The position numbers were made by a program, and so were the translations under genes. Under the pieces are notes generated by a model, which saw nothing but the letters and a program-made list of their open reading frames with translations, did not search any database and was not told where the DNA came from. Positions 1 to 32,789 of a DNA stretch of 64,000 bases are shown here, piece after piece. The stretch is taken from positions 62,001-126,000 of IMG/VR virus record IMGVR_UViG_3300009703_004110. One strand, given 5' to 3'. The number at the start of each line of letters is the position of its first letter. Positions within the stretch are counted from its first letter, which is position 1.

Positions 1-265
1 TAATAACCACCATATCAAGGCTATCTAATATTTTCTTTTTTTGCTCAAAAGTATAAACCAGATGGTCATTAGTTCCGCGTATCCAGACATTAGTCTTTCT
101 TCCATAATCGCGTCTAAATTTTTTATTTAACGAAAAATCATTAAATCTTATTATTAGATCATGACTATCTATTTTGTGCCCATGACGTTGACCAATTTCG
201 CACGGGCTATTTCCCACGATACAATAATCTTTACGTTTTGAGAATAATTTCTCTATATTTGACAT
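1..265 (-). CDS. GT29 (eukaryote-type sialyltransferase-like) glycosyltransferase, 3'-truncated by window edge; absent from ORF track
   Basis: Manual translation of the minus strand from ATG at 265 (in-frame ATGs also at 307/313): MSNIEKLFSKRKDYCIVGNSPCEIGQRHGHKIDSHDLIIRFNDFSLNKKFRRDYGRKTNVWIRG..., open to base 1. This matches sialylmotif L (CxxVGNS...G..ID.HD.(V/I)IR.N...DVG.KT). Confidence 0.8.
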   Translation of the reverse strand, partial: MSNIEKLFSKRKDYCIVGNSPCEIGQRHGHKIDSHDLIIRFNDFSLNKKFRRDYGRKTNVWIRGTNDHLVYTFEQKKKILDSLDMVVI

Positions 266-322
266 CCGCGGCCCCCACAAGTATTTTGTACTGCAGACTA
301 TAATCATGCTCATTTCAAATAC

Positions 323-898
323 TTAATTTTTTGGGACGGCCTCTATTCTAAGCTCTCCCTTTTTTGTAGTCTCTATCCGAACGATATTGAAATATTCAGT
401 GATAGCTCTAGTCCACCAATCTAAGTCTTTTACTGTGATATGAGAATTTCTACCATTCGGAAGAATCTTCCTAGAAAGCCTGGTGGATATTGTAAAGTAT
501 GCTGCCATATTAGTTAGATAAGCAATATACTCTAAAGTCGTTTTAACTTTGTCCTCTTCGATATGCTCCATTACATCCATACAAACTACAAGATCTGCTC
601 TGGATGGAAGACTTGAAAATGATTTAATACACGGATCAAAGTTGGATATCTTTAAATTCAATGGCTCATCTAAAATAAAGTCAGCTATTTCAAAGGCAAT
701 AGAGAGGGTCGCCTTTCCGCATCCATAATCTAATAGGCTTTCTACATTATATCTGTCTATAATATCATGAACTGCTTTGAAATGCTTATAAGAGTGCCTG
801 CCGTACGCCAGCCGGTTTATATGAAGGTCTTTATTTAACTGTCGTAACTCATCTGATACTAAAATACCAAGTTCTAGTTTCTGGCCATTTATTATCAC
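323..898 (-). CDS. Class I SAM-dependent methyltransferase
   Basis: LLDYGCGKATL motif I and ADLVVCMDVMEHIEE; GTG start overlapping the gmd stop, with GGAG SD. Confidence 0.8.
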   Translation of the reverse strand: MIINGQKLELGILVSDELRQLNKDLHINRLAYGRHSYKHFKAVHDIIDRYNVESLLDYGCGKATLSIAFEIADFILDEPLNLKISNFDPCIKSFSSLPSRADLVVCMDVMEHIEEDKVKTTLEYIAYLTNMAAYFTISTRLSRKILPNGRNSHITVKDLDWWTRAITEYFNIVRIETTKKGELRIEAVPKN

Positions 899-1884
899 TC
901 TATCTCCGCAAGATCATTTTCATACATCTCTTTTAATAAGTCTTCACAACTATATGAAGGCTCCCAGCCAAGAACTTTCCTCGCCTTTGTCGCGTCACCC
1001 TTTAGAAAGTTAACCTCTGATGGCCTCATAAATCTTTCATCAACCCTGTAAACATCTTCGACCTTTAATCCGGCCAGATCCTCGCAGACGTACTTGAACA
1101 TTTCCCCAATGGACAGTGGGTTTCCTGTGGCAATTACATAATCATCCGGGACTTCTTGCTGTAACATCATCCATTGGGCCTCAACATAGTCCTTTGCGTG
1201 CCCTTCGTCACGGAAGGCTTCAAGGTTGCCCATTCTAACATGCTCCGCTAGACCACTTTTAACTGCCGCAATACCTTTGGTAATTTTTCTTGTTGCAAAG
1301 TCATGACCACGTCTTGGAGAGCTATGATTAAATAAGATGCCATTTGATGCATGTAATCCATACGCTTCTCTATAGTTAACTACAGCATAAAATGCCGCAG
1401 CCTTTGCTATGGCATATGGTGAACGAGGATGGAATCGGCTGTCTTCATTCAATCCCGCCTCTGGACAGTTAATACCACCAAATAACTCAGAGGTGCTAGC
1501 TTGATAGAACTTTGTGTGCGGTGACAACTGCTTAATCAAATCAAGCTGCATAATTACTGCCTCACCATCAACTCGGAAGGTTGTGATAGGCTCTTTGAAT
1601 GATTGACCAACGTGAGACATTGCGGCCAGATTGTAATATTCATCAGGCTGCCATTCGATCAGCAGCTTTCCAATAAAAGATGAATCTGTTATATCGGAAT
1701 AAAGCAGCTTAAAATTTTCATGCTTCAATATCTTCTCTAGATTCTCTAGTCCATTGTTAACAGACTTTCGCCTGGTTATTCCTATAACCGTGTATCCCTT
1801 CTTTAATAAAAATTCCGATAGGTATGAGCCATCCTGCCCTGCGCATCCGGTCACAATAGCCGTAAGGCTTTTACTTCTTTCCAT
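895..1884 (-). CDS. gmd: GDP-mannose 4,6-dehydratase
   Basis: TAIVTGCAGQDGSYL, YNLAAMSHV, FYQASTSELFG, SPYAIAK, NGILFNHSSPRRG..FATRKIT, MGNL.A.RD.GHAKDYV. Start revised to the ATG at 1884 (MERSKS). Confidence 0.95.
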   Translation of the reverse strand: MERSKSLTAIVTGCAGQDGSYLSEFLLKKGYTVIGITRRKSVNNGLENLEKILKHENFKLLYSDITDSSFIGKLLIEWQPDEYYNLAAMSHVGQSFKEPITTFRVDGEAVIMQLDLIKQLSPHTKFYQASTSELFGGINCPEAGLNEDSRFHPRSPYAIAKAAAFYAVVNYREAYGLHASNGILFNHSSPRRGHDFATRKITKGIAAVKSGLAEHVRMGNLEAFRDEGHAKDYVEAQWMMLQQEVPDDYVIATGNPLSIGEMFKYVCEDLAGLKVEDVYRVDERFMRPSEVNFLKGDATKARKVLGWEPSYSCEDLLKEMYENDLAEIE

Positions 1885-2602
1885 TAATAATCTCCAATAA
1901 TAACTTTTTCCAAATCTCTCTATTAAAATTTGTTTTAGCATGGCAACTTCTACATAAAGTAATTAAATTAAGAACATTGTTATTAAACTTATCATAATCT
2001 ATATGATGTACATCATATCCATTGTTTTTACATATTGCACAAGAAAAATTATCTCTTTTTCGAACTGAAGTTCTTAAGTTATCGTTCCACTCTTTTGGTC
2101 TTTCTAAAAATGAAACTCCACCTTTCCAAGAGCCGTTTTTATCTCCCGAAACTTTATCACCATTTTGATACATTGGATTGTTTGAGCCAGAGACATCTGT
2201 ATGATTTTCAGATATAAGCTTTTTTGATTCAAAAGAATGAGATTTTCCATAAAAGCTATTTTTTGTCCCAGATTGAGCCTCTGATAATTTAGCTTTTATT
2301 AAAGAGGCCTTATATTCTCCATGTTTTTTTACATAAGATCCCTTGTTTGATTCTGATAAAATCTTTTTTGTTTCTTCCGAATGCTTTTTCCCATAAAACG
2401 GATTATTTTCTCCACTTACTTTTTTAGATAACGCCTCTTTAAATTCGTCCGTTCTTTTTCTTCCAGTATTTGTAAATTTTGAAGCACAGCTTCTGCTGCA
2501 AAAACGCCTAACTCTCAATCTTGCAGTATCTCGTACTTCAAAATTTAATCCACATTCTTCACAGATTTTTACAATATATTTTTTTATAAGTCGATTACTC
2601 AT
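1871..2602 (-). mobile_element. Free-standing HNH homing endonuclease with N-terminal Zn ribbon and NUMOD3 repeats
   Basis: CEECG...FCSRSC; SGENNPFYGKKHSEETK and SGTKNSFYGKSHSFESK (NUMOD3); CAIC...DVHHIDYDKFNN...NLITLCRSCH. AAGGA SD before ATG 2602. Confidence 0.85.
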
Positions 2603-2667
2603 AATTATCCTTAATGACATTTATATCTGGTATCACTATATTAAGATATTACCAGTTATGATGACCA

Positions 2668-3693
2668 CTAAGTATTTTCTTTTATAGACATTTTCTTCTT
2701 TCTCTTCTCAATTTTTGATGCTTGAGAGCTTTTCCTGATTGCCTTAAATAATCTTTTGTGATTTTTTACCAAGAAATCAAATGCATGACCAGACTCTATT
2801 TCTGTAATTTCAAATTGGCAATAAGCAAGATGATACAATAAAGGCTCTCTATCTGGATAGATAGGATACTCTATATATCTATAGTCATGAACGGCTATAC
2901 CTTGCGCAGGGCTTATTTTTTCTGTAAATATAGGCACACCCTCGATGATCGCCTCTATTGAAGTCGCACTAGCCGGGGCTACACATGCCCAAGCACCCTT
3001 TAAATCAACTTGAATTGGTCTATCAATAGAGCTGCTTAGGACTTCCGCATTAGATATGCCCTTTACGGCTCTGTAGATTGGCCTTATATCCGTTCCTCCT
3101 GGCTTTGGTCTTACTCTGATTGGTCTATCAGTATTCGCTCTGATAATTTTCATAGTATTCTTTAGCCAGTTTGGCTTCATTCCCATTGCTCCAGAAAAAA
3201 ATCCAGTTGGAGGGCAGACTAGGACGTACTCACCTTCGGTTTTCCACGGCTTAAGCTTTATATTGAATTTCTCAAAGCGATCTGCCGGTCTTCTCTCTAT
3301 CTTGGTTGGATGAATCCCATTGGCTACTATTCTAAAGCTTGGAGGATTTCCAGAATGAACACCCTTCCATCTATAACCTCTATCAAAATATGCATGGTCT
3401 ACATAAAGTAAATCACCAGCACCATCTTGTAAGCATGGCTTAACAATCTTGTGAATAGTATCTTTACCAAAAGCTACAGATAGCCCTGGATATATCTGGT
3501 CTACATCTTGAGACGCATATAAATGCCCATACCCTCTGGATGTATCAACTAGTTTAAGCATGACATATCGCGGGAATAATTTATGCCTATCCATATAAAA
3601 GTTGATATTAAAACGAGACTCGTCCCTATCGCTAGTTTCTTTTGCTACTTTAGCGACCCTCTCTATCCAGCCCGGCTCTAATCTCCATTTCAT
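2668..3693 (-). CDS. KpsS/KpsC (Capsule_synth)-like GT-B glycosyltransferase, paralogue 1
   Basis: Shares with the other four paralogues: YV(D/E)xxYF, VLVCPP, RPIRVRPKP, SIEAIIEGVPIF, YPDREPLLYHLAYCQF. Confidence 0.55.
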   Translation of the reverse strand: MKWRLEPGWIERVAKVAKETSDRDESRFNINFYMDRHKLFPRYVMLKLVDTSRGYGHLYASQDVDQIYPGLSVAFGKDTIHKIVKPCLQDGAGDLLYVDHAYFDRGYRWKGVHSGNPPSFRIVANGIHPTKIERRPADRFEKFNIKLKPWKTEGEYVLVCPPTGFFSGAMGMKPNWLKNTMKIIRANTDRPIRVRPKPGGTDIRPIYRAVKGISNAEVLSSSIDRPIQVDLKGAWACVAPASATSIEAIIEGVPIFTEKISPAQGIAVHDYRYIEYPIYPDREPLLYHLAYCQFEITEIESGHAFDFLVKNHKRLFKAIRKSSQASKIEKRKKKMSIKENT

Positions 3694-3694
3694 A

Positions 3695-4684
3695 TTATGC
3701 AGGACCCATTATAAAGTCTTTTCCGGCCCTCTCTAAAACTTTGTAACCGAAGGTTTTAATGATATACTTTTTTGTTTCATTATTTATTCTGCCCTCTAAC
3801 TCTAGTTCAACTATCATGATTGGCTGGCATCTTTTGATTGTCTCTGTAGCACCTTTAATAACTGCATCTTCAAAACCTTGTACATCTATTTTGATAAGAT
3901 CTACATTTTTAAGCTTGAAGCTGTCAAGCGTTCTTACCGCTGTACCAGTTCCTTTGGTTGCGTATGTATTTCCACTATTTCCAGCTTCAATATTTAAAAA
4001 TACCTCGCCCTCTTCGCTTCCTAGGGCGATATTGTGACATATAAGGTCTGGGCAGTTTTTGATGAAGCATTCATAACTCTCGGCTGACGGCTCGAATGCC
4101 ACCACTCTTTCAAAATGCTCAGACATCGCCTTGGAGTAAAACCCAACATGTCCTCCAATATCTACGGACGTGTTTCTGCCCGATAAATATTTTAGAACCT
4201 TTACGTAGGTATGGTATTGATATCTATCCGTATCTCTTGGAAAATGGTCGTCATCTTTTGGAAGTGCCATCTCACTTGGCCTGCGCTTACTTGCTATCAT
4301 AAAGACTCTTTCGCTATTATTTAGAAAGGTATCTATTCTCCAGCGATGCTGAAAGTGTCGCGCAAAGACGCGCTCATTTTTTAAAAACCTGCTGCTTGGC
4401 ACCTTGGAGTCTATAAGAATAGTATCAGCAACCTTTGGAAGATTTTCGATGATCTTTCTTATATCCACATCCCTGTTTCTTTCTAAGAATTTAGAAACAA
4501 TAACTAGGTCAAAAGAGTGAGCGTCCAGACTTAGAGCCTCAGATGGTGACACGAACCTAACAGAAGCTGTCGGGAAAAATTTACGTAGATGCATCATAAG
4601 ATCACCAGTTTTATTTCCATAAACTCCGATTGTCTCAAACCCGTAACCACGTAAAGAGCGTTTAATTTGTTTCAAATTATGCAT
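3695..4684 (-). CDS. FkbM-family methyltransferase with an extra N-terminal Rossmann-like domain
   Basis: SVDIGGHVGFYS...VVAFEP...IALG...LDSFKL.NVDLIKIDVQGFE..VIKGA; N-domain contains SFDLVIVSKFLE. Confidence 0.8.
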   Translation of the reverse strand: MHNLKQIKRSLRGYGFETIGVYGNKTGDLMMHLRKFFPTASVRFVSPSEALSLDAHSFDLVIVSKFLERNRDVDIRKIIENLPKVADTILIDSKVPSSRFLKNERVFARHFQHRWRIDTFLNNSERVFMIASKRRPSEMALPKDDDHFPRDTDRYQYHTYVKVLKYLSGRNTSVDIGGHVGFYSKAMSEHFERVVAFEPSAESYECFIKNCPDLICHNIALGSEEGEVFLNIEAGNSGNTYATKGTGTAVRTLDSFKLKNVDLIKIDVQGFEDAVIKGATETIKRCQPIMIVELELEGRINNETKKYIIKTFGYKVLERAGKDFIMGPA

Positions 4685-5540
4685 CTAATATTCTCCAAAT
4701 CTTTGGTGACTTCATTTCATGAACAGTAAATTGTCCATAGGATAAGTGTCTCATCCACATTTCCCTATTTGGATAAACAGGGTCATTTATTTTTGACAGA
4801 CGCTTTAAGCCCATTGGCCTAGAAGCATTAGGCCCAAGTGTAAATACCGGAATGCCGTGCATTACCGCCTCAATGCCGGCTACGCTATTATATGTTACCA
4901 TAGCAAAAACATCATTGTCAAAATCATCCTGGATTATGTTTTCAGTCAGTCTAAGGGTTCTAACTCTAGGTTTCAACCTTACTCTGATCTCTTTATCAGT
5001 ATTTTTCTTGAGCCTTTTGACGATTTTTTTTGTCCATACTTCAGCATCAATATTAAAATAGTGAGCGGACTTTAAGGATGGGGGACAGATTAAAATTGTT
5101 CCGCCTTTCTTCTTCCACGGAAGAAGAATCTTATTCCAGTCAACGCCTTGGTGCTTATATATAGTCTTTTGTGCCAGTTTATATCTATCATTGGGACGTG
5201 GTATAATCTTGTCAAATTGCACATCATTTTTAACAATTCTATGGAATAGCTTTCCTGTAGTAAGAATCGGCTTACCCTTTGGATCTGTATAATACTTACT
5301 AAGATTCCCAAAGTAACCGGTCTCTACATAATAATAGTCGATACCGTATTCCAAAGCTAAATGCATAACTCTTCTGTCACGAAGCCCTCTAACTAAAATC
5401 TTAGAGCCTCTATATTTTTCAATATTATTCATGAAGTCTTTTTTGACCATGATTTCTGCATCACAAGACTTGGCAAACTCACTAAGAATGCTGTCTCCTG
5501 GCCTAAAATAAAACGATCTATTCTTCATATCATTTTTCAT
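4677..5540 (-). CDS. KpsS/KpsC-like glycosyltransferase, paralogue 2
   Basis: YYYVETGYF, ILICPPS, IRVRLKP, TYNSVAGIEAVMHGIPVF, YPNREMWMRHLSYGQFT. Confidence 0.6.
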   Translation of the reverse strand: MKNDMKNRSFYFRPGDSILSEFAKSCDAEIMVKKDFMNNIEKYRGSKILVRGLRDRRVMHLALEYGIDYYYVETGYFGNLSKYYTDPKGKPILTTGKLFHRIVKNDVQFDKIIPRPNDRYKLAQKTIYKHQGVDWNKILLPWKKKGGTILICPPSLKSAHYFNIDAEVWTKKIVKRLKKNTDKEIRVRLKPRVRTLRLTENIIQDDFDNDVFAMVTYNSVAGIEAVMHGIPVFTLGPNASRPMGLKRLSKINDPVYPNREMWMRHLSYGQFTVHEMKSPKIWRILDA

Positions 5541-6357
5541 TTACAATCCCCAGGCGTTTATGAAGCCCCTTATCGTGTCGGAAGTATTCGGCTAGCATGC
5601 CTCTTTCTATTACATGTGATTGGCTTCTGCGCTTATTCGAATAATTCGATACTAGATCATTACCCGTTATACCTTCTCTCTCTTTCATTTCAAGAACTAC
5701 ATTGCCAAACATGCCGCCGTCGTCCCACATCATGTATCTTCTAAAGACTTTATTTTTATACTTATCGATCCAGCAATTCAGAACTCGTCGACCTGTTCTG
5801 TCCGTCCGAAAGCCTATAAAACCAGACTCCACTCCGAGGCCCTTCTTGGGCCTCTCACTTCCCCAGTGATAGAAAAATGCCTTTCCGCCAAAAGCTTTAT
5901 CCATGAGCCTTGGTGTTAGGTTTTTAGTTACTTTGGCATCCGCATCTAAAAAAACTATGGCATCATATTGATTTCCATAGTGACTCATTGCATAATCTAA
6001 AGTTACAATTTTTCTAAACCATCCTGCCGCTCTAAAGTTCCACGGCAAAAAAGCTTGAGGCACCTTCTTCCTGTCAGCTCTTCCTCCCATTTCTGGCGGA
6101 ATAACATCAGAGTTTTCTTTTAGCCACTTGACCAGAAATGGATTTCTGGTCATATTGTATGCTTTAATTCTGTGTATATGTTTCTCTCGAATTTTTCGAG
6201 ACTCCATATATGCTGGCTTCATTGCATTATATTTAAAACCTTCATAACACAATAGGAGATCGCCCTCAGATTCGCTCTTGAAAAAAGAGTTGATCATATC
6301 TTTCGCGGACGCTTTCCAGATACGATGGTTGAAGGTGGTTACATATAATACATTCAT
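5530..6357 (-). CDS. GT-A fold glycosyltransferase (DxD)
   Basis: FRKIV...IVFLDADA...VESGFIGF...WDDGG...HDKG. Start revised to ATG 6357 (GAGG SD). Confidence 0.65.
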   Translation of the reverse strand: MNVLYVTTFNHRIWKASAKDMINSFFKSESEGDLLLCYEGFKYNAMKPAYMESRKIREKHIHRIKAYNMTRNPFLVKWLKENSDVIPPEMGGRADRKKVPQAFLPWNFRAAGWFRKIVTLDYAMSHYGNQYDAIVFLDADAKVTKNLTPRLMDKAFGGKAFFYHWGSERPKKGLGVESGFIGFRTDRTGRRVLNCWIDKYKNKVFRRYMMWDDGGMFGNVVLEMKEREGITGNDLVSNYSNKRRSQSHVIERGMLAEYFRHDKGLHKRLGIVNEK

Positions 6358-6370
6358 AAATACCTCTTTA

Positions 6371-6378
6371 TATTTATA
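6371..6378 (-). promoter_or_regulatory. Possible T4-late-like promoter TATAAATA in the divergent gap
   Basis: Exact TATAAATA on the minus strand 13 nt before ATG 6357; the genome is AT-rich, so this is weak evidence. Confidence 0.25.
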
Positions 6379-6431
6379 TACTTGCATAGTAATATAGTGA
6401 CAAATGAAAAGTTAGAGATGGGGTTTTCGAA

Positions 6432-7454
6432 ATGAAAGTTGGTATATTTTTGGCGACTACTAGTGGTAAGGCAAAGCAAGATATTATGCGAAGTTTTGCC
6501 GCTGGTGTCAAAGCCTCTGGTGACCTTGCCAAAATATTTGATAAGCGAGAATATCGCAAGTGTGATTTAGCTTTAATATTTGGATTTTATAATGACCAAA
6601 ACATGGGAGCAATACAGTCCTTTAGAAAAAAAGTTTATGAAACCCACGAAAGTCGTGGAAGAAAATGTTTGTTTGTCGATGCAGATTTTTTGAGATTTGC
6701 AGGAAAAATTAGAGCCGAAGCTCCAGATGATCCAACTCAGCACCTTAGAATCTCTCACGGTTCCATCTTTCCAAGTCGCGCTAATTACTTCAATGAGTTT
6801 TCCGACAATAGACGATGGAAAGAATTAAGAAGAAGAAAGCATATAGTTGTAAAAGATTACCGAACCGATGGGGATCATATCCTAATGTTACTCAATAGCA
6901 GTAGCAAATATGGCAGAGGCTGGTCTGCTCGCGGAACAGATAGTATGTACTGGCTGCAGAAAAGTTTATCCGAAATTCGTCAGTACACAGATCGTCCTAT
7001 TCGAGTTAGATTTCATCCTAATGAAAAGAAGGATTTAAGAGAGTCTAGACCAGTCGAGGCCTTACAGAAAATGTATGGAAATATTACCTTTTCTGGTGGC
7101 GTTGTCGGATCTAATAAAGCGATACTTCCACCCAGAACTTTGATAGAGGATTGTGATAACGCATGGGCCGCCGTAGTCCATACGACCTCTGCTTCCGTTA
7201 TACCAATAATAAATGGGATTCCTGTCTTTACAAGTAGTCGAGACTGTATTGCTTTTCCTATCGCAACACATCGTTTATCAAAAATAGAGAAGCCGAGCCT
7301 GCCAAAACGAGAGCAATGGTTTTATGATCTATCCTATAGTCTATGGAACGTAGAAGAATTGAGGGATGGAGTTGCGTGGAAAAGAATTAAAAGCAGAATA
7401 AACTCTAGCGGAGACTATTCTAAAGCAAAAGCTAAAAAGCTTGGGATTATTTGA
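6432..7454 (+). CDS. KpsS/KpsC-like glycosyltransferase, paralogue 3 (only substantial plus-strand gene)
   Basis: 340 aa; DRPIRVRFHP, SASVIPIINGIPVF, PKREQWFYDLSYSLW..EELRDG.AW match the minus-strand paralogues; 8-nt convergent stop overlap at 7447-7454. Confidence 0.7.
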   Translation: MKVGIFLATTSGKAKQDIMRSFAAGVKASGDLAKIFDKREYRKCDLALIFGFYNDQNMGAIQSFRKKVYETHESRGRKCLFVDADFLRFAGKIRAEAPDDPTQHLRISHGSIFPSRANYFNEFSDNRRWKELRRRKHIVVKDYRTDGDHILMLLNSSSKYGRGWSARGTDSMYWLQKSLSEIRQYTDRPIRVRFHPNEKKDLRESRPVEALQKMYGNITFSGGVVGSNKAILPPRTLIEDCDNAWAAVVHTTSASVIPIINGIPVFTSSRDCIAFPIATHRLSKIEKPSLPKREQWFYDLSYSLWNVEELRDGVAWKRIKSRINSSGDYSKAKAKKLGII

Positions 7455-8965: not shown

Positions 8966-8975
8966 TTTTAAATCC

Positions 8976-12954: not shown

Positions 12955-12955
12955 C

Positions 12956-15706: not shown

Positions 15707-15712
15707 AAAACC

Positions 15713-16501: not shown

Positions 16502-16502
16502 T

Positions 16503-18383: not shown

Positions 18384-18391
18384 CTTTCTTC

Positions 18392-20253: not shown

Positions 20254-20254
20254 T

Positions 20255-21418: not shown

Positions 21419-21428
21419 TCAAACTCCT

Positions 21429-24751: not shown

Positions 24752-25767
24752 GAGTTGCCCCTAATGTGAGCCAGTATAGCTTTACTAGCTGTAGTTTTTT
24801 CAGTGTACCTTTTGAGATTCTGACCTAAAAATCTATGATATGTAGGATCTTCTTTTAAGTACCTCTCAAGGCTTTGTACCTTACCTTTAAATATAAATAT
24901 ATCCTCACGGTATCGGTGAGAATAAACTTTTGCTGCGGCACTAAAATGATTGCCGTAAGTGCCGACAATTTTTTTGTCAAGGAGCGCTGGAAGTAACATG
25001 GCTGAGGACGGTAGGGTAAATAAAAAGATTTCAGATTTTGCGGCTATCTCCGCCTCGCTCCATGAATTAACTAAGGTATATTCTCCAAGTTTATGTTTTT
25101 TAAAAGCCTTTCGTATTAATTTTGGAGATCGCGAATGCTCTCTTAAATAGACCTTTACTCCGGTTTTGTCTGCCAAATCTTTAGATAATATTGCAGTCAT
25201 TTCTGCAACCTTTTCATCTTCCATTCTATGGCTAGTATCAAAAATAACTATATTCTTCTCAGGCTTGTGAATATTTACCTGCTCTAACATGTCTTCTATT
25301 CTTGGAGAACCAATGGCTGTCATCTTTTCTCCGCATCCAACTTTAGACATTATAGAGAGAGTTTCCTTACCGTATGCAAAAAAGGCTTTGGCGCCCATTA
25401 GGTTTGCCCTGTATAAATGGCTTTTCTTTCCGTTTGACTCAGTATATCTAAACATCGGCGGCGCATGATCCACGATATAGAATGGAATTTTTTTATTTAC
25501 CGCATGTTGGGCTGCCAGTCTATCTCCGTACCACCAAGGCTGCACTAGGATAACCGCATCAGGTTTTAATTTGTTAGTCAGGAAATCTCGCATCGGCGTA
25601 TCTGACAGACTCGTGTAGGGTGACTCTTTGAATTTTTTTGGATTATCCGTCATTTCATAAGAAAAGGAGCCGTACACTTCGTCGCCAGACTCCATAGCCT
25701 CTCTAACTAATGGTCTTAAATTATCTGCATAATAATCATATGGAGAGCTATAAAACAGTAATTTCAT
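24748..25767 (-). CDS. GT-B fold transferase (CDP-glycerophosphotransferase / epimerase-like fold); candidate acidic-sugar transferase
   Basis: AIGSPRI, REHSRS, SSAMLLPALLDK; directly upstream of the HAD-neuB-neuA-kdsA run. Confidence 0.4.
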   Translation of the reverse strand: MKLLFYSSPYDYYADNLRPLVREAMESGDEVYGSFSYEMTDNPKKFKESPYTSLSDTPMRDFLTNKLKPDAVILVQPWWYGDRLAAQHAVNKKIPFYIVDHAPPMFRYTESNGKKSHLYRANLMGAKAFFAYGKETLSIMSKVGCGEKMTAIGSPRIEDMLEQVNIHKPEKNIVIFDTSHRMEDEKVAEMTAILSKDLADKTGVKVYLREHSRSPKLIRKAFKKHKLGEYTLVNSWSEAEIAAKSEIFLFTLPSSAMLLPALLDKKIVGTYGNHFSAAAKVYSHRYREDIFIFKGKVQSLERYLKEDPTYHRFLGQNLKRYTEKTTASKAILAHIRGNS

Positions 25768-26774
25768 ATATATCTCCTAATTAATCCAGTGAATTCTTTT
25801 GCCCTTCTATCATGATTATGCTTTGCCATGACATACTTATGTGCTGTATGTATCTTATCTCTTAGTAAATCCGGATTTCTGACGTGATAATATATCTCTC
25901 GATGCATACGCTTTAAATCACCACGATCCTTGCTGTATGGAATAAAGGTCCCCTCTGGCAAGATTTCTGAGCCATTGGTTGGGACTCCTACCAACATTGA
26001 ATAGCTAGCCGGTATTTGAAAGTATTTTGCCGTCATGAAGTTGCAAGTTCCGCCACAAGCTAATCCGAACTGATTGGCCGTATAAAACCTTACAAATTTT
26101 TCTCCGGTTAATATCTCCCTTCTAAATTTTCTTCTATTTGTAATCTTGGAAACTTGAAGCATCTTTCTTTTTTCCAGAAAATCCATCGCCGCAATACGAT
26201 GCGCATACAACTCCTTAGATGAGTTATGAGCTGCACCAAGAAATCCAACCTTAAAGTTCTTAGCCTTAACATCCTTTATTATGTTATTTTTATACAGCTT
26301 GCGATCTATAGAGAACGGCAGCCAATGGCCATCTATTTCTAATGGATTCTCTAATGCAATTTTGTGTCTGAAAAATGCTGCGGTATATCCCAAATCTTTA
26401 AACCAGTCTGCTTGACTCTGCCTAAATCCGGAGCGGCAATAATCTGTTGTTACATGAAACTTCGGAATGCTAGTTTTTGATAAAAAATCCTCGACCCACT
26501 GATATCTATGTACATTATCTAAGCCTATTTCGTAACTAGAGCCATTGCAGTTATATGTCAATATAATATCTGGCTTCATTCTGGACGCTATATGGTCAAG
26601 TTCCTTCGTAACTGCCGCCCTATTTGGATTTGTTGACTTCGGAAGATATTTATGCATATATCTGCCATAGCCCATAATGCGATGTATATTGTTCTTGTGC
26701 ATATGAGATATAAAATCTATATGCAAATCGGCATTATGTCCGTAATCCCTGTTGTCAATATACAGTATCTTCAT
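25764..26774 (-). CDS. CgeB / Glyco_trans_1_2-like glycosyltransferase
   Basis: WLPFSID..LY, VGFLG..H..Y..R, AKYFQIPASYSMLV, NHD.RAKE. Confidence 0.6.
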   Translation of the reverse strand: MKILYIDNRDYGHNADLHIDFISHMHKNNIHRIMGYGRYMHKYLPKSTNPNRAAVTKELDHIASRMKPDIILTYNCNGSSYEIGLDNVHRYQWVEDFLSKTSIPKFHVTTDYCRSGFRQSQADWFKDLGYTAAFFRHKIALENPLEIDGHWLPFSIDRKLYKNNIIKDVKAKNFKVGFLGAAHNSSKELYAHRIAAMDFLEKRKMLQVSKITNRRKFRREILTGEKFVRFYTANQFGLACGGTCNFMTAKYFQIPASYSMLVGVPTNGSEILPEGTFIPYSKDRGDLKRMHREIYYHVRNPDLLRDKIHTAHKYVMAKHNHDRRAKEFTGLIRRYI

Positions 26775-27634
26775 AAGTATTTTCTTATTAGATTAAAACA
26801 GTTTTCTTTATATAACTTCTGACTAAGAAGCCTGGTATCTCTATTCCCATATCTCAATATATAGTTACCTCTATCACAACGAATAGTTCCTTTAAATAAA
26901 TTTAAGTGCTCTTTTATACTTTTTAAAAAGTTATTAGAATTTGAATATATTGAAATATTTTTATATTTTCCATTAGAATAGAGAGAGCCGTCACCTTCAT
27001 AAAAACCTTTTATGAAGTAGTCTATATATTGATCCTCAATGTTTGGAAAAATTAAATTATTAGACTTAGGAGAATGTATATTAAAATCTCTGACAATTTC
27101 TGAACATATTTTTTTATTTGACAAGACCCATTTGGCATATTTATCGTTCACTATATAAATTTTTGAAATTGGATACATTTTCTTAAAATATTCTAATACT
27201 TCTATATCATTTTTAGATATTTTAATTTCAATCTTTTGATTTGTAATATATCCATCCGCAAATATCCATCCTAAAAGATAAAAGAATTTATAGTCTCTTT
27301 TACGCAAAAAATTACGTTTGCTTAACCCAAGTCTTTTAAGCTTTGCGCTTATAGCCCCAGAAGTATATGGAAGATATTTCGACATTTCATTGGAGGACAT
27401 TTCTAAGTAGTTATCTTTCAAAAAAGATTCGTCGCTTTCTGTCCATTTTTTATTCTGCCTCTTCAGACATCCGCATGATTTAGTTATATTTTGAACCAAA
27501 CTACTTGATGCAATAATTTTTGTATTTCCACATTCACATTTACATATCCAGGTAAATCGCCCATTATTATCTATACTACCTGCTTTAATAATCGTTAATT
27601 TTCCTATTTTTTTATTCGTCAGGTCTTTCATCAT
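26771..27634 (-). mobile_element. Free-standing LAGLIDADG homing endonuclease with N-terminal accessory domains
   Basis: Two LAGLIDADG helices (YLLGWIFADG, FIKGFYEGDG); DLT.KKIGKLT..WICKCECG..KSCGC module; KKW..LKD.Y HTH-like module. Confidence 0.8.
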
Positions 27635-27641
27635 CCTCTCT

Positions 27642-29671: not shown

Positions 29672-31203
29672 CAGATATATTCTCCCGGAAACTTGACAAG
29701 TCCCTCACTCTTTGATATTTCAATATAAAAATTATCCATGCATAAAATGGATTCATAAAATAATTTTGAATTGTCTTCAATATTATGATTTAATTCTATA
29801 TACTCTCGTGCGTTTTCTATGAGGTCTTTATTGTCAACTATCCTTCGTATAATCTTTGAATCTTTTTTTGGATTCATAGTTAAAAACCTTCCATTATAAC
29901 CATCTTTTAGTATATCAGGTATGGCCCCTACTTTAGATGCACATACCGGAGTACCAGAGGACATAGCTTCTAATATCGATATTGGCGTACCTTCCATTTT
30001 TGATGGTAAAACAAAGACGTCAAAAACATTATAAAACTTTTCCACTTCTGGCTTAAATCCCATCATACGAACATTTTCTGTCTTCTGACTATTTATAGCT
30101 TTGGAACGCGGGCCATCACCTACAATGAGAAATACCGCATCCGGCATAGTCTTGGCTAACTCCAAAATGTATTCATGATTCTTTTCTGGAGATAGCCTCG
30201 CAACAGTTCCAACTATTATAGAGTCGTGGGGCAGGCCGAGCATGGTCTTTATGTTCTTTTTATTTCTTACATTAAAGCGCTCCAAGTCTACGCCTACTGG
30301 AACGACTGTTCTGGCGTCACCACGTATACCATCTATATTTTTAGCTAAGCTATCAGCTATAGTGATTATATGCTCTACATAGTCTCGTCTTGGTAGTTTA
30401 GACACAGCGTCTGGCCAGCTAAAATCGCTGTGGTATATTTCCACTAACTTTGCCGAAAGCTCTCCATCCTTCTTCATATTAGATAATATCTTATAGACTG
30501 ATGCACTATTGTAGTAAACCACATAATTAAAGTTTTCCGCCTTAAGCATTCCCATCAGATGTGCCGAACTTTTAACATCTTTATGATTAACCGCCCCATC
30601 AATCTTAAACTTGACAGGGTTAGGCTTCATATAGATCATAGTTATGTTCATCGACTTGTTTTGTATTCGATTCACTATTTCTTGCAAGTAGATCTCACCA
30701 CCGCCATATATTCCGTATGGCACTACGAATGCAATCTTCTTTTTGGAGACCTTTTTGAGTTCGTCAGGATATATAACCTTTCCTTTCTTTCTCTTGTACT
30801 TTGGAACGGTTTTGGGCTGAGATGCCTCTTTCTTTTCTGATTTCTTGTCTATCATAAGTCGCGCTATTTCCACACTTCCAAATGTGGTGCCGGAACGTGA
30901 CAGTATAAGGCTCGCACTACCCGACTTTTTGACTCTGAACGGAAAGGCATATTCTGACCAAGATGATGTAGAAAAGGTAATTCTCTTATTTATATAGTTG
31001 ACCGAGTCTCCGTCTTCCACTCTGAAATCCATAACGCCATTACCACTTCTTTTTTTGCCTATTATTTTGATATTGTATTCGCCAGGAGATAACAAAAGCT
31101 TATGCTCGAAATTTGCAGATTTTAGGACTACAAGATTCGTTCCGTCAATCTTGACGCCGCGCCCATTCCAGTTCTTTGCCCTAGCTGAGTCGAAAATTAT
31201 CAT
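29671..31203 (-). CDS. GT4 glycosyltransferase with an N-terminal beta-sandwich-like domain
   Basis: C-terminal GGGEIY, GTVARLSPEK, IVGDG, FVLPSKMEGTPISILEAM; about 120 aa beta-rich N-domain plus a Lys-rich linker. Confidence 0.8.
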   Translation of the reverse strand: MIIFDSARAKNWNGRGVKIDGTNLVVLKSANFEHKLLLSPGEYNIKIIGKKRSGNGVMDFRVEDGDSVNYINKRITFSTSSWSEYAFPFRVKKSGSASLILSRSGTTFGSVEIARLMIDKKSEKKEASQPKTVPKYKRKKGKVIYPDELKKVSKKKIAFVVPYGIYGGGEIYLQEIVNRIQNKSMNITMIYMKPNPVKFKIDGAVNHKDVKSSAHLMGMLKAENFNYVVYYNSASVYKILSNMKKDGELSAKLVEIYHSDFSWPDAVSKLPRRDYVEHIITIADSLAKNIDGIRGDARTVVPVGVDLERFNVRNKKNIKTMLGLPHDSIIVGTVARLSPEKNHEYILELAKTMPDAVFLIVGDGPRSKAINSQKTENVRMMGFKPEVEKFYNVFDVFVLPSKMEGTPISILEAMSSGTPVCASKVGAIPDILKDGYNGRFLTMNPKKDSKIIRRIVDNKDLIENAREYIELNHNIEDNSKLFYESILCMDNFYIEISKSEGLVKFPGEYI

Positions 31204-32303
31204 AACAATCCTAAAATCTGATTAGCGGCATTTTCCCAAGTAAACCTTCTTAACGTTTCTTGCCTTCCTAACTCAAACTTATTCATTAAGGTTTGGTGGT
31301 TGTTAAATGCCAGCAACATTGCCTCAGCTAAATCATCTTTATGCGGCATAAATGTTGTTGCGCCAGGTGTCGGTCTCCAATATTGGTAGTGCCCCGGCGC
31401 CTCAACCTCTTTTACATCATACAAGATCGAATTTTCATTATTTAGAAAATCTAGTTGACCAGTACACTTTGGCGAAATAACCAGCATATTAGCCGCTAGA
31501 CCTTCCAGCAGTGGTAGGCCAAATCCTTCCGATGATGCTGCACTAACTAGGCAATTACATGAGTTATATAATGGGACCATGCTTGGAAACTTTGTTTGTA
31601 TAATCTCTACCTGAGGAAGTCGTTTACCTTTATTCTTATAATATCCCTGAACTGTCAGAAACTGTTTCATGATATCAACTTCAAAACTAAACCTCTTTCT
31701 ACTTTTAGGAGGGTTTAAATCTGTCTTTATTACGAGACATACGTCATCGTCCTGATCAAAAGCCGTGTAATATGCCTCAAGTACGACATTCATATTCTTT
31801 CTATAATGAGGAATTGATACATTAAGAAATCTGAAGCTCTTTTTGTTTCCAAGGTTAACAGTGCTCTTGTTATCAAAATCTTCTGGATGAATACCGTGCG
31901 GGACTACTACGCATTTATCTGGGTTTACACCGCTATTAACAAAAACCTCTTTTGAGAAATTACTTGATGGTAAAGCCACATCCAAATGATCAAACTTCTT
32001 TGCCCACTCTGGCGGCATTAAACTAGTCTCATAATTATAAATTGCCATTTTCATTCGAGACTTCTTAGCGAATCTTGCCGGGAAGTTACGTGGCAATGTA
32101 TAACATATGTCAAGATCCGGACTATGATAATCCCTCTCTTTATGAGGATCCCAGGATGGCGGAACATTATTATAGTTATTGGTAGTCGTTATATAGCAGT
32201 CATGCTCTTGTTTTATAAATTCACCAAGAAGGGCCCGCATTGTGACAGCCCATGAATGGTGAGTACCTATTATCCCCCTGCTTCTGATTTTGAGCTTACT
32301 CAT
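31200..32303 (-). CDS. GT4-like glycosyltransferase (first gene of the island)
   Basis: YNYETSLMP.EW, VVPHGI, HYRKN, LYNSCNCLVS.ASSEGFGLPLLE. Confidence 0.78.
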   Translation of the reverse strand: MSKLKIRSRGIIGTHHSWAVTMRALLGEFIKQEHDCYITTTNNYNNVPPSWDPHKERDYHSPDLDICYTLPRNFPARFAKKSRMKMAIYNYETSLMPPEWAKKFDHLDVALPSSNFSKEVFVNSGVNPDKCVVVPHGIHPEDFDNKSTVNLGNKKSFRFLNVSIPHYRKNMNVVLEAYYTAFDQDDDVCLVIKTDLNPPKSRKRFSFEVDIMKQFLTVQGYYKNKGKRLPQVEIIQTKFPSMVPLYNSCNCLVSAASSEGFGLPLLEGLAANMLVISPKCTGQLDFLNNENSILYDVKEVEAPGHYQYWRPTPGATTFMPHKDDLAEAMLLAFNNHQTLMNKFELGRQETLRRFTWENAANQILGLL

Positions 32304-32715: not shown

Positions 32716-32789
32716 ATTATTATGTTACTGTATGAAAAAATGAAATTTAGTTAAAAATGAAGTTAACAGCAGGAAACTTTTTTCGAGTG

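Follow-up and report, generated by a model that had tools for sequence, protein, structure and literature searches.

An uncultured marine jumbo phage (about 390-420 kb) carries, directly after its tail-fibre genes, a block of roughly 44 kb and about 50 genes for soluble sugar-making and sugar-transferring enzymes which, judged by family and fold, build an acidic, methylated glycan with no exporter of their own. We favor, tentatively, the virus particle as the place where this glycan ends up, although none of our results identifies what it is attached to. The window analyzed is a 64,000-nucleotide stretch (positions 62,001 to 126,000) of IMG/VR record IMGVR_UViG_3300009703_004110, and all coordinates below refer to it. 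The original prediction, made from the sequence alone, described about 37 co-oriented, coupled genes for three sugar donors, about 17 glycosyltransferase (GT)-like domains, four to five methyltransferases, and two oxygenases, starting ~1.2 kb after the last baseplate gene. That observation is confirmed, with counts close to ours, and the island proved larger than described. The accompanying interpretation, a soluble phage analogue of giant-virus glycosylation systems acting on virion proteins, is only partly supported.

Gene content of the island

We first listed the open reading frames. There are 38 ORFs between 323 and 32715, of which 37 lie from 323 to 32303; 36 of these are on the minus strand and one, 6432-7454, is inverted. 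Most neighbors overlap by 1-20 bases or lie under 10 bases apart. The proteins were then compared with Pfam and NCBIfam profiles, and selected members with PDB profiles and by structure prediction. In the order of transcription of the minus strand, beginning with the tail genes, the features are:

54058-60228 (-), putative tape measure protein of 2056 aa; hydrophobic segments at residues 1278-1425, a position upstream of the baseplate genes that matches Bacillus phage G, conserved in relatives, no family hit
51826-52257 (-), gp25-like sheath initiator/baseplate protein; Pfam Sheath_initiator E 1.6e-6, below the cut-off, 84% identical in relatives
48502-51816 (-), baseplate wedge (gp6/J-like), 1104 aa; phrog_6 E 5.6e-43, 29% identity to phage G gp188 baseplate wedge
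38855-48502 (-), giant fibre/receptor-binding-type protein, 3215 aa; C-terminal ConA-like lectin domain (Laminin_G_3, E 4e-12), conserved at 51-65% in three lineages
33512-38062 (-), 1516-aa distal tail protein, constant upstream neighbor of the island and inferred candidate acceptor; no family hit, orthologs at 57-66% identity directly before the first GT in all three lineages
33186-33590 (-), HNH homing endonuclease (insert); Pfam HNH E 1.6e-5, absent in relatives
32716-32953, 238-base spacer with three to four TATATACT-like repeats, inferred as a possible start of the island's own transcription unit; a similar AT-rich spacer precedes the first GT in the relative L021
32296-32715 (-), Cys-rich zinc-ribbon ORF (Stc1-like) overlapping the first GT by 8 bases; Pfam Stc1 E 6e-4, below the cut-off, not found in the relatives L012 or L021
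31200-32303 (-), GT4-type glycosyltransferase 1 of the conserved head; Glycos_transf_1 E 6e-8, orthologs at 56% and 72% identity
29671-31203 (-), GT4-type glycosyltransferase 2 (510 aa, TarM/GtfA-sized); Glycos_transf_1 E 1.6e-29, PDB hits TarM, BshA, and PglA, orthologs at 40% and 52% identity
28562-29671 (-), GT4-type glycosyltransferase 3; Glyco_trans_1_4 E 5.6e-8, orthologs at 55% and 68% identity
27642-28565 (-), GT4-type glycosyltransferase 4, last gene shared by all three lineages; Glycos_transf_1 E 7e-12, orthologs at 47% and 57% identity
26771-27634 (-), LAGLIDADG homing endonuclease (insert); Pfam E 4e-10, GC 0.27, paralog of 38119-38853, absent in relatives
25764-26774 (-), probable GT-B glycosyltransferase; Glyco_trans_1_2 E 6e-4, below the cut-off, 58% identical ortholog in L012
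24748-25767 (-), clade-restricted protein; 33 homologs, all on metagenomic contigs, several of 200-420 kb, no PDB profile hit, and only 11% probability in hhalign against the Kdo-transferase-like family
24428-24751 (-), short HAD-type phosphatase, inferred candidate Kdo-8-P/nonulosonate-9-P phosphatase; weak HAD hits, 65% identical ortholog, always directly upstream of NeuB
23571-24428 (-), NeuB-family nonulosonate synthase without C-terminal SAF domain; Pfam NeuB E 3e-62, NCBIfam NeuB/PseI hits below the cut-offs
22906-23574 (-), CMP-nonulosonate synthetase (PseF/NeuA-like); CTP_transf_3 E 1e-27, PseF E 2.8e-35
22136-22909 (-), Kdo-8-phosphate synthase KdsA; NF003543 at 338.6 bits, above the 242 cut-off
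21429-22136 (-), FkbM-type methyltransferase, start of a 7.4-kb lineage-specific cassette; Methyltransf_21 E 6.5e-13; the cassette is absent from the relatives L012 and L016, where KdsA and KdsB are adjacent
20255-21418 (-), DegT-family sugar aminotransferase/dehydrase; Pfam E 7.8e-61, RfbH/PseC-like
19339-20253 (-), GDP-L-fucose-synthase-like epimerase/reductase; Epimerase E 2.4e-49, Fcl model E 4.7e-70, below the cut-off
18392-19339 (-), GT10 (fucosyltransferase-type) glycosyltransferase; Glyco_transf_10 E 5.5e-7
17718-18383 (-), 2OG-Fe(II) oxygenase of the carbohydrate-cluster type; TIGR04324 E 1.5e-12, weak PhyH hit
17162-17725 (-), 187-aa ORF with no hits in the profile searches
16503-17162 (-), truncated DegT-like protein (219 aa); DegT E 7.8e-23 on the N-terminal part only, aligning to residues 38-228 of the full-length paralog
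15713-16558 (-), possible O-fucosyltransferase-like GT (weak); O-FucT E 0.005, below the cut-off
14741-15706 (-), PhyH-type 2OG oxygenase, end of the cassette; PhyH E 1.5e-10
13984-14757 (-), CMP-Kdo synthetase KdsB; NF003952 at 256.7 bits, above the 193 cut-off
13407-14000 (-), arabinose-5-phosphate isomerase (SIS domain only); SIS E 2.3e-22, KdsD/KpsF E about 1e-51
12956-13426 (-), HIGH-family sugar-phosphate nucleotidyltransferase; CTP_transf_like E 4.6e-11, RfaE domain II E 2e-16
12151-13041 (-), eukaryote-type phosphomannomutase; PMM E 2.6e-37
11364-12173 (-), GT8/GT24-type GT-A glycosyltransferase (73% conserved); profile hit to WbbM at E 2.7e-5, AlphaFold pLDDT 90.8, top Foldseek hits UGGT, WbbM, GlyE, glycogenin, and LgtC, invariant D116 and D118
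9707-11407 (-), fusion of a GT8-like N-terminal and a beta-Kdo-transferase-like C-terminal domain; paralogy with 8976-9710 and 8072-8995, weak GT8 and DUF6716 hits
8976-9710 (-), GT8-like domain protein; 41% identical to the N-terminal domain of 9707-11407, weak GT8 PDB hit
8072-8995 (-), beta-Kdo-transferase-like glycosyltransferase, the modelled member; AlphaFold pLDDT 95, top 28 PDB matches all KpsC/WbbB/KrkA with E down to 2e-8, invariant RPHP motif
7447-8085 (-), class I SAM methyltransferase; Methyltransf_11 E 1.3e-6, 49% identical ortholog in L016
6432-7454 (+), beta-Kdo-transferase-like paralog, assigned by paralogy; 48% identical ortholog on the opposite strand in L012, so that the gene is also inverted in the relative
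5530-6387 (-), protein that travels with the Kdo-transferase-like family; no Pfam hit, homologs next to family members in the Planctomycetota loci L022 and L028, an 11/12 sigma-70-like promoter match at 6511-6483
4677-5540 (-), beta-Kdo-transferase-like paralog; Capsule_synth 20.8 bits against a cut-off of 20, paralogy
3695-4684 (-), FkbM-type methyltransferase; Methyltransf_21 E 6e-16
2668-3693 (-), beta-Kdo-transferase-like paralog; paralogy, best match to the Caulobacter phage CcrSC homolog
1871-2620 (-), NUMOD3/HNH homing endonuclease (insert); NUMOD3 E 2.5e-23, GC 0.295
895-1941 (-), GDP-mannose 4,6-dehydratase; GDP_Man_Dehyd E 7e-107, gmd model E 5.7e-107
323-898 (-), class I methyltransferase; Methyltransf_23 E 8e-6, 30% identical homolog in the CcrSC mini-cluster
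1-265 (-), 5' part of a minimal GT29 (sialyltransferase-family) gene that runs off the window; GT29 E 7e-11, homologs only on marine metagenomic contigs, including Tara

Within the window, about 15 GT domains are supported: five GT4/GT-B, one GT10, one weak O-FucT-like, three GT8-like (one of them, 11364-12173, confirmed by profile and fold), and five beta-Kdo-transferase-like, confirmed by fold. With the two ORFs 24748-25767 and 5530-6387 left without assignment, the predicted figure of about 17 is a fair upper estimate. The tailoring enzymes comprise four methyltransferases and two 2OG oxygenases. Three ORFs inside the island are homing endonucleases or mobile-type genes rather than glycan genes.

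No protein of the island shows a 19-residue hydrophobic window typical of a membrane helix; the only two values above 1.6 lie inside the KdsA and SIS folds. All island enzymes are predicted to be soluble, with no membrane segment in any of the roughly 50 island proteins.

Extent, flanks and conservation

The island is cut by the window. Gene tables and Pfam searches of the adjoining sequence showed that it continues for about 11.6 kb past position 1 with a sugar dehydrogenase, an epimerase, a GT4, a DUF7487 mobile-type gene, a 1385-aa protein without assignment, a GT2, and a GT4. It ends next to a phage tubulin and a UvsW helicase, with more GTs on that side, while the tail module forms the other flank. 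A cellular chromosome with export genes on the flanks had been named in advance as grounds for rejecting the prediction; both flanks are phage, and no priming phosphoglycosyltransferase, flippase, polymerase, ligase, or ABC exporter appears in the about 75 kb of sequence read. Base composition and codon use of the island match the phage.

At the tail side, only 48502-51816 and 51826-52257 are baseplate genes by homology. The two giant genes between them and the island, encoding the 3215-aa and 1516-aa proteins, occupy the fibre position. The island therefore follows the fibre-type genes and does not replace them, in contrast to its predicted location directly downstream of the baseplate genes. 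The 1.2-kb gap is real, but it is filled by an HNH endonuclease, two small ORFs, and the 238-base spacer; in relatives the gap is only 0.3-0.45 kb.

We next compared the region with related jumbo phages, and the synteny check asked for in the original prediction was positive. Three lineages, which have diverged to 50-70% amino-acid identity, keep the order tape measure, baseplate, 3,200-aa fibre, 1,500-aa protein, and four GTs, whereas the rest of the island varies between lineages. However, the related genomes are collinear over the whole stretch read, so the conserved adjacency to the fibre gene may only reflect general genome collinearity and is weak evidence of a functional link.

A family predicted to fold like beta-Kdo transferases

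The five paralogous domains, with the fold predicted for the member 8072-8995, resemble retaining beta-Kdo transferases (KpsC/WbbB), a finding not part of the original prediction. The best viral structural matches of this family are four paralogs in the algal giant virus TetV-1 (E 5e-20, TM 0.75-0.77), which gives the proposed giant-virus analogy a concrete link. The same family occurs in a mini-cluster between tail-fibre and lysis genes of cultured Caulobacter jumbo phages, an independent parallel in isolates. In the jumbo siphophage CcrSC, homologs of three island genes (the Kdo-transferase-like gene, the GT8-like gene, and the methyltransferase) sit between the tail-fibre genes and the lysis cassette, a late region, together with Maf/GT42-like and GT9-like genes.

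On the other hand, the solved relatives of the family (KpsC, WbbB, KrkA) all work on lipid-linked, exporter-dependent surface polysaccharides, and a cellular homolog lies in a Planctomycetota polysaccharide locus with an ABC transporter.

Possible acceptors of the glycan

We consider the island to be a self-contained cytoplasmic glycan-assembly line of an uncultured marine jumbo myophage. The supply of donors, the assembly, and the tailoring are shown at the level of family and fold, whereas the acceptor and the function are inferred. In this view, phage enzymes top up activated sugars: CMP-Kdo from the isomerase, KdsA, probably the small HAD phosphatase, and KdsB; a CMP-nonulosonate from the NeuB-like, HAD, and PseF/NeuA-like enzymes; GDP-6-deoxyhexoses from phosphomannomutase, GMD, the Fcl-like enzyme, and DegT; and a uronic acid added by the sugar dehydrogenase and epimerase just beyond the window. 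About 19 soluble GTs, including those beyond the window, build the glycan, among them the four conserved GT4 enzymes next to the fibre gene, the five beta-Kdo-transferase-like domains, the three GT8-like domains, the GT10, and the minimal GT29, and the FkbM-type and class I methyltransferases and 2OG oxygenases modify it.

We hypothesize that the acceptor is a phage structural protein made at the same time, the best candidates being the 1516-aa or 3215-aa distal tail proteins encoded just upstream. The four conserved GT4 enzymes would lay down a constant inner part and the lineage-variable remainder would add an outer, acidic, methylated part. The resulting coat would change the virion surface through shielding, colloidal behavior, or mimicry of host or prey surface glycans. 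Besides the conserved gene order, the native composition, and the Caulobacter and TetV-1 parallels, this reading is favored by the island lying on the same strand as the tail genes and being tightly coupled to them, although the 238-base spacer with repeated motifs means that it may be a separate transcription unit of unknown timing. No recognised protein-priming transferase (Maf, OGT, TibC, or HMW1C type) was detected in the island, and the reading remains tentative.

Host-envelope remodelling, somewhat less probable in our view, remains a serious rival. It is the usual reading of such clusters, and published interpretations of comparable jumbo-phage and cyanophage clusters favor host-surface modification (PMC7824862, PMC12801897, PMC13282480). 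The absence of membrane machinery speaks for the virion, since phage systems proven to convert the host surface (gtrABC, wzy, oac) all include, to our knowledge, membrane proteins. However, peripheral GT-B enzymes of LPS core synthesis also lack membrane segments, so the solubility of all island enzymes does not exclude a lipid acceptor at the inner membrane. DNA glycosylation is unlikely: phage DNA glycosylation with Kdo is now known (10.1101/2023.12.21.572611), which makes this alternative more real than the original prediction assumed, but the evidence here is against it.

The novelty was overstated in the original prediction, as large phage-encoded glycan clusters are already described, including ones with kdsA/kdsB and 13 GTs; the present island is a new and unusually large example. 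Virion glycosylation itself has precedents, being proven in mycobacteriophages (Freeman 2023, cited in PMC12619734) and in chloroviruses and Mimiviridae, whose glycan clusters are clade-specific (PMC9614988).

Gene content and extent of the island

The window is part of the 332-kb IMG/VR contig IMGVR_UViG_3300009703_004110, with window position x corresponding to contig position x + 62,000, and the same sequence occurs in a 391-kb JGI contig and a 420-kb ENA contig. All long ORFs but one lie on the minus strand, the GC content is even at 0.32-0.42, and no tRNAs were found. A nucleotide search of both halves of the window against 50,697 phage records returned no match, so there is no close isolate. 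In the upper half of the window, we identified a contractile-tail module: a 2056-aa protein with hydrophobic segments in the tape-measure position, a gp25-like sheath initiator, a gp6/J-like baseplate wedge (phrog_6, E 5.6e-43; 29% identity to Bacillus phage G gp188, whose neighbourhood has the same order), a 3215-aa protein with a C-terminal ConA-like lectin domain, and a 1516-aa protein with no family match. A PHROGs search with the eight large tail-region proteins matched only the gp6-like protein and the endonuclease. The island therefore follows fibre-type genes and does not take their place.

We next scanned all 38 ORFs between 323 and 32715 with Pfam and NCBIfam. The scans confirmed the inventory of the original prediction, which had described a three-donor glycosylation machinery, and its observation thus held. 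Most neighbouring genes overlap or lie a few bases apart. The donor-pathway and related features with their scores are as follows, all on the minus strand.

22136-22909: Kdo-8-phosphate synthase (KdsA), NF003543 at 338.6 bits against a cut-off of 242 and TIGR01362 at 328.6 against 314
13984-14757: CMP-Kdo synthetase (KdsB), NF003952 at 256.7 bits against 193 and TIGR00466 at 175 against 155
13407-14000: SIS-only putative arabinose-5-phosphate isomerase, matching the SIS half of KdsD/KpsF (E about 1e-51), without CBS domains and below the cut-offs
24428-24751: short 107-aa HAD-like ORF, the only candidate Kdo-8-phosphate phosphatase (KdsC), with weak sub-threshold hits
16503-17162: 219-aa DegT-like protein, apparently truncated, lacking the C-terminal domain

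The nonulosonate branch consists of a NeuB-family synthase (Pfam E 3e-62) and a PseF/NeuA-like cytidylyltransferase (CTP_transf_3 and PseF E 2.8e-35). Both score below the NCBIfam equivalog cut-offs, which leaves the exact sugar undefined. Of the upstream steps that make the six-carbon precursor (NeuC, PseB/C/H/G or LegB/C/H/G), only DegT-type aminotransferases were found in these scans, with no 2-epimerase, N-acetyltransferase or PseB/LegB equivalog; we infer that the precursor may come from the host or from mannose-6-P. The GDP-deoxyhexose branch comprises a phosphomannomutase, a GDP-mannose 4,6-dehydratase (GMD), a fucose-synthase-like reductase and a DegT enzyme. Tailoring is represented by four methyltransferases, of FkbM or generic class I type, and two 2OG oxygenases, of the PhyH type and of the type matched by the 'sporadic carbohydrate cluster' oxygenase model (TIGR04324). 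A hydropathy scan revealed no membrane-type segment in any island protein.

Homing-endonuclease or mobile-type ORFs, at least five in total, pepper the tail and glycan region. They are two paralogous LAGLIDADG-type genes, one NUMOD3/HNH gene, one HNH gene and one HTH+DUF7487 gene (window 26771-27634, 38119-38853, 1871-2620 and 33186-33590, and 10001-11581 of L011, the sequence fetched beyond the window start). Three ORFs in the island are homing endonucleases, read as recent arrivals from their much lower GC (0.27-0.30, a value that holds for two of the five ORFs). Relatives lack these genes or carry them at other positions: the DUF7487 gene sits among the head glycosyltransferases (GTs) in L012, a relative's locus.

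The flanking sequence showed that the island is larger than the window. Window 1-265 is the start of a minimal GT29-family gene, followed by a nucleotide-sugar dehydrogenase, a TviC/GalE-like epimerase, a GT4, the DUF7487 mobile-type gene, a lysine- and glutamate-rich, apparently helical 1385-aa protein with no family match (L011 11653-15810), a GT2 and another GT4. Right after the island lie a TubZ/PhuZ-like tubulin, a membrane protein of the fatty-acid-hydroxylase family and a UvsW-type helicase interrupted by an intein with Hint and LAGLIDADG domains (L011 17543-18964, 19057-19590 and 19651 onward). The island thus spans about 44 kb and about 50 genes, with about 19 supported GT domains. 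The dehydrogenase (L011 6344-7547) looks truncated or split, as its 278-aa product lacks the C-terminal domain and is followed by a 130-aa ORF; the short form is conserved in the relative (283 aa). The GT29-like protein (212-228 aa; L011 5702-6340) scores 42.4 bits against a gathering threshold of 23 (10586-11269 of L008, another extract of this flank), but the match covers only profile positions 52-110 of 272, the sialyl-motif-L region of this otherwise eukaryotic and viral sialyltransferase family. Its 33 homologs are all on marine metagenomic contigs, including Tara, several of 200-420 kb, making it a useful marker for this phage clade. The 'alpha-2,3-sialyltransferase' of Caulobacter phage CcrSC is not detectably related to it.

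Both flanks are phage genes on a 391-420-kb viral contig, which led us to reject a cellular chromosome or a prophage; a cellular flank with export genes, the condition set beforehand as refuting the original prediction, was not found. Recent horizontal acquisition of the whole island was also rejected, because its composition is native and its core is shared by a lineage at about 55% identity. Membership of the 'moraphage' lineage (PMC12619734), whose genomes reach only 307 kb and lack a tape measure gene, was considered as well.

Predicted transferase families and their relatives

An all-against-all comparison of the island proteins revealed five paralogous domains and a second, GT8-like pair, which are listed below together with the other ORFs examined by profile or structure.

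8072-8995 (-): beta-Kdo-transferase-like protein
9707-11407 (-): fusion of an N-terminal GT8-like domain and a C-terminal beta-Kdo-transferase-like domain
8976-9710 (-): GT8-like protein, paired with the N-terminal half of 9707-11407
6432-7454 (+): beta-Kdo-transferase-like protein, the only inverted gene
4677-5540 (-): beta-Kdo-transferase-like protein
2668-3693 (-): beta-Kdo-transferase-like protein
11364-12173 (-): most conserved of the initially unidentified ORFs
24748-25767 (-): clade-restricted protein
5530-6387 (-): protein with homologs beside the family in Planctomycetota
323-898 (-): methyltransferase

The region 8976-11407 represents a tandem duplication with fusion, as the two genes that follow 9707-11407 encode the same two domains as separate proteins, at 41% and 36% identity. 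The five-member family has 240 homologs (at least 240 members at 90% clustering), almost all unannotated and metagenomic, and the named cellular ones are mainly Planctomycetota. A model based on a 41-sequence alignment was confident (pLDDT 95), and its top 28 PDB matches are all retaining beta-Kdo transferases of the GT99/GT107 type, KpsC, WbbB and KrkA (E from 2e-8 to 7e-6, TM 0.41-0.58, about 0.55 for the best). An R-P-H-P motif is invariant or nearly so across the 41 sequences; its correspondence to the His-Pro nucleotide-binding motif of these enzymes is inferred from the published motif and not from a structural overlay. No Asp is invariant in the 41-sequence alignment, although several are in a 7-sequence subset, and the catalytic Asp nucleophile that forms the Kdo adduct (KpsC D160, WbbB D232) was not located. 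Sequence similarity is marginal: only 4677-5540 reaches Pfam Capsule_synth, at 20.8 bits against 20 over a 32-residue stretch, and the profile scores E 0.084 against KpsC in the PDB. Use of CMP-beta-Kdo as donor is inferred, with co-encoded KdsA, KdsB and isomerase providing only circumstantial support.

Single-sequence PDB searches with 11364-12173, 24748-25767 and 8976-9710 gave nothing significant, and profiles were needed. By profile and predicted fold, 11364-12173, which belongs to a family of about 1,500 members, is a GT8/GT24-type transferase. In contrast, a 20-sequence profile of 24748-25767 found nothing in the PDB, and hhalign against the Kdo-transferase-like family gave only 11% probability. 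The first head transferase gave only non-significant PDB hits, including chlorovirus B736L at E 0.056, which we did not use.

Three lineages of 230-420-kb contigs keep the order tape measure, 576-aa protein, gp25, gp6, 3200-aa fibre, 1515-aa protein, small ORF and four GT4 genes. The lineage at about 55% identity shares most of the island, including the inverted gene, the nonulosonate and Kdo genes, the GT8-like gene, the Kdo-transferase-like genes, GMD, GT29, the dehydrogenase and the epimerase. It has KdsA, KdsB and the isomerase adjacent, while in the window a 7.4-kb cassette (21429-14757: methyltransferase, DegT, Fcl-like, GT10, oxygenases) is inserted between KdsA and KdsB. The closer lineage (66-77% identity in the fibre proteins) shares only the four head GTs and then carries quite different genes: a GT-methyltransferase fusion, more GT4s, sulfatase-family and sulfotransferase-like proteins, and a nucleotidyltransferase. 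The locus therefore has a constant head next to the fibre gene and a body that is exchanged between lineages.

Beyond this clade, the Kdo-transferase-like family is present in 13 Caulobacter jumbo siphophage records and in one Pelagibacter phage. In a 42.7-kb podovirus genome from a freshwater spring (MW202713.1, 2165-6581), four genes lie directly upstream of terminase, portal and capsid: a transferase annotated TibC, a methyltransferase, an unannotated Kdo-transferase-like ORF (40% identity) and a DegT enzyme. In one Planctomycetota genome, the family lies in a polysaccharide locus with GT4, GT8-like, polysialyltransferase-like and methyltransferase genes and an ABC transporter, and in another it is adjacent to homologs of 11364-12173 and 5530-6387. 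A 462-kb uncultured huge phage carries KdsA (55%), KdsB and the isomerase.

Possible acceptors of the glycan

The analysis establishes a native, conserved, exporter-less, predicted soluble assembly line for an acidic, methylated, multi-sugar glycan in a jumbo phage, whereas the acceptor, the donor used by the expanded family and expression together with the structural genes are inferred. We tentatively favour phage structural proteins as the acceptor. As far as is known, every phage system proven to alter the host surface uses membrane proteins, and none was found in the island. The locus and its small Caulobacter-phage counterpart lie in late-type, structural territory; the constant head travels with the fibre gene while the body varies, like an inner core plus a variable outer part; the key enzyme family is shared with a giant virus of a eukaryote; and virion glycosylation is proven in mycobacteriophages and giant viruses (PMC9614988; Freeman 2023 as cited in PMC12619734). 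However, adjacency to the fibre gene could reflect plain collinearity, the nearest solved enzymes and the cellular homologs belong to exported surface polysaccharides, and LPS-core-type transferases are also soluble. The original interpretation, a phage analogue of giant-virus systems that glycosylates virion proteins, is partly supported, being neither demonstrated nor refuted, although it can now be tested in cultured Caulobacter phages.

The island is on the same strand as the tail module and contiguous with it, but a 238-base spacer (32716-32953) filled with three to four TATATACT-like repeats precedes it. One more copy lies at 6375-6382, about 50 bases upstream of the only plus-strand gene. 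The repeat may be a phage promoter element, though its count across the whole window is only about twice the chance expectation. An 11/12 match to the sigma-70 consensus lies at 6483-6511 (-), inside the 5' end of the inverted gene, and could restart transcription of the downstream minus-strand genes. Sigma-70 promoter and intrinsic-terminator scans were at chance level and say nothing about timing.

Alternatively, the transferases might act at the inner face of the host membrane on lipid-linked acceptors such as lipid A-core, undecaprenyl-linked O-units or a lyso-phosphatidylglycerol capsule primer, with host MsbA/Lpt or KpsMT-type machinery exporting the altered LPS or capsule. This would block superinfection or stop progeny from sticking to debris, and it is the standing interpretation of comparable clusters in cyanophages and jumbo phages (PMC7824862, PMC13282480, PMC12801897). 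The five expanded domains are predicted to fold like enzymes of capsule and O-antigen synthesis, a cellular homolog sits in the ABC-transporter polysaccharide locus, Kdo, nonulosonates and fucose are typical bacterial surface sugars, and the variability between lineages resembles O-antigen and capsule loci. On the other hand, no priming enzyme, lipid A Kdo transferase (GT30), flippase, polymerase, ligase or exporter is present in about 75 kb, and Pfam and hydropathy revealed no priming phosphoglycosyltransferase, flippase, polymerase or ABC exporter in the window or in the 17 kb beyond it. Late-type structural surroundings, and a position between tail-fibre and lysis genes in the Caulobacter phages, are poor places for a function that should act early. 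The family also occurs in a giant virus of a eukaryotic alga, and no lytic phage is known, including in the papers examined, to have been shown experimentally to rebuild host LPS or capsule with such a cluster. We consider host-envelope remodelling rather unlikely, but the leading alternative.

Another cytoplasmic or released product seems unlikely. The island might make a free or lipid-anchored polysaccharide released at lysis, such as a decoy or matrix, or might glycosylate host flagellin, pilin or S-layer protein to remove receptors. The soluble, exporter-less system and the phage-supplied donors, which suggest bulk synthesis, would agree with this, and nonulosonate and Kdo transfer to flagellins is known (10.1101/2020.06.03.131540). 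However, no Maf-type transferase was detected in the island, such a product has no precedent in phages, and this reading explains the conserved placement next to the fibre genes no better than virion glycosylation does.

DNA hypermodification, by which sugars on modified bases would help escape restriction and other nucleic-acid defences, is very unlikely. Phage GTs do attach Kdo, heptose, uronic acids and up to trisaccharides to 5-hydroxymethylcytosine, in clusters with HAD enzymes and cytidylyltransferases (10.1101/2023.12.21.572611), and the island contains cytidylyltransferases, methyltransferases and 2OG oxygenases. Yet no C5-cytosine methyltransferase, TET/JBP-type oxygenase or hydroxymethylase was detected in the island or its flanks, which make up only about a fifth of the genome, so that base-modifying genes elsewhere are not excluded. 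The oxygenases and methyltransferases are of carbohydrate or generic type, and about 19 transferases from at least six families far exceed any known DNA glycan. Assembly into 390-420-kb contigs from ordinary short-read data in several independent samples is only weak evidence against bulky base modification.

If the glycan is on the virion, complex self-glycosylation would not be limited to giant eukaryotic viruses and a few actinophages: marine jumbo phages would join them, devoting about a tenth of a 400-kb genome to it, with effects on how the particles adsorb, aggregate, survive grazing and are recognised, and on how virome fractions behave. In its boldest form, which is possible but still doubtful, a cosmopolitan clade of marine jumbo phages coats its own tail fibres or virions with a lineage-variable, methylated glycan rich in Kdo and nonulosonate and built entirely in the cytoplasm without lipid carriers or exporters. 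This would be a bacterial-virus counterpart of Mimivirus and chlorovirus glycans, using a previously uncharacterised branch of the retaining beta-Kdo-transferase fold shared with the algal giant virus TetV-1 and cultured Caulobacter phages. If the target is the host envelope, this would be the most elaborate phage system for rewriting a cell surface, built without any membrane component. Either way, a widespread, unannotated protein family of phages, a giant virus and Planctomycetota gains a fold-based functional lead as a Kdo-type transferase, and the Caulobacter-phage cluster makes the long-standing question of what phage polysaccharide clusters are for directly testable in a laboratory host.

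Comparison with described systems

Phage-encoded polysaccharide gene clusters are already described. Those of large cyanomyoviruses and other jumbo phages (P-SSM2, S-SCSM1, S-SCSM2R; Iyer et al. 2021) likewise combine many GT families with nucleotide-sugar enzymes, HAD phosphatases, 2OG oxygenases and O-methyltransferases and vary between related phages, and S-SCSM2R also has kdsA/kdsB, with 40% identity to the KdsA found here (PMC12801897; PMC7824862). The present island belongs to a different, uncultured marine lineage and is larger, with about 44 kb and about 19 GTs against 13 GTs recently described as possibly a record (PMC12801897). It forms one contiguous block directly after the fibre genes, with a head-and-body architecture, and has three donor branches, among them a nonulosonate branch and a nearly complete Kdo branch with a putative isomerase step, together with five beta-Kdo-transferase-like paralogs and a minimal GT29-like enzyme; for neither system is a function known from experiment. 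Our literature searches found no paper describing this clade's island or glycosylation in Caulobacter phages.

The clusters that glycosylate phage DNA (Pyle et al.) also use GTs for Kdo, heptose or uronic acids, with accessory HAD and cytidylyltransferase genes, but they are small, centred on a cytosine methyltransferase plus a TET-like oxygenase, neither of which was detected here, and their glycans have at most three sugars. The characterized beta-Kdo transferases KpsC/KpsS (GT107), WbbB (GT99) and KrkA act on lipid-linked polysaccharides exported by ABC transporters. Virion glycosylation in mycobacteriophages (Che8, Corndog, Myrna; Freeman et al. 2023) is the only proven phage precedent: the GT genes lie within or next to the structural operon and act in the cytoplasm on capsid or tail-tube proteins. 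It involves two to four genes without sugar-donor pathways, a Gram-positive-type host and C-terminal extensions of major capsid and tube proteins as acceptors. A distant baseplate J match to Myrna was found.

In the cultured Caulobacter jumbo siphophages (CcrSC, CcrBL9, CcrColossus and relatives), homologs of the Kdo-transferase-like gene, the GT8-like gene (32%) and the methyltransferase 323-898 (30%) lie in a row directly after the tail-fibre genes. In CcrSC they belong to a six-gene cluster, with Maf/GT42-like and GT9-like genes and no donor pathways, which lies after the tail and tail-fibre genes and before the endolysin and spanin genes. The genes are annotated as hypothetical, and we found no study of them in the papers searched.

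Giant eukaryotic viruses (Mimivirus/Megavirinae fibril glycans, chlorovirus capsid glycans, the CroV Kdo cluster, TetV-1) infect eukaryotes and are unrelated to tailed phages, but encode soluble pathways for bacterial-type sugars plus many GTs with clade-specific content. CroV encodes the Kdo pathway in a 38-kb, 34-ORF cluster (PMC9614988). Virion glycans are chemically proven for chloroviruses and Mimiviridae, but not for CroV, TetV-1 or this phage. Against predicted viral structures, the best matches of the Kdo-transferase-like family are four paralogs of TetV-1, Tetraselmis virus 1 (BFVD A0A2P0VP54, A0A2P0VNK4, A0A2P0VP72 and A0A2P0VP74; E 5e-20, TM 0.75-0.77). The cell covering of Tetraselmis is rich in Kdo-type keto-sugar acids, and this may be a case of viral use or mimicry of host Kdo glycans.
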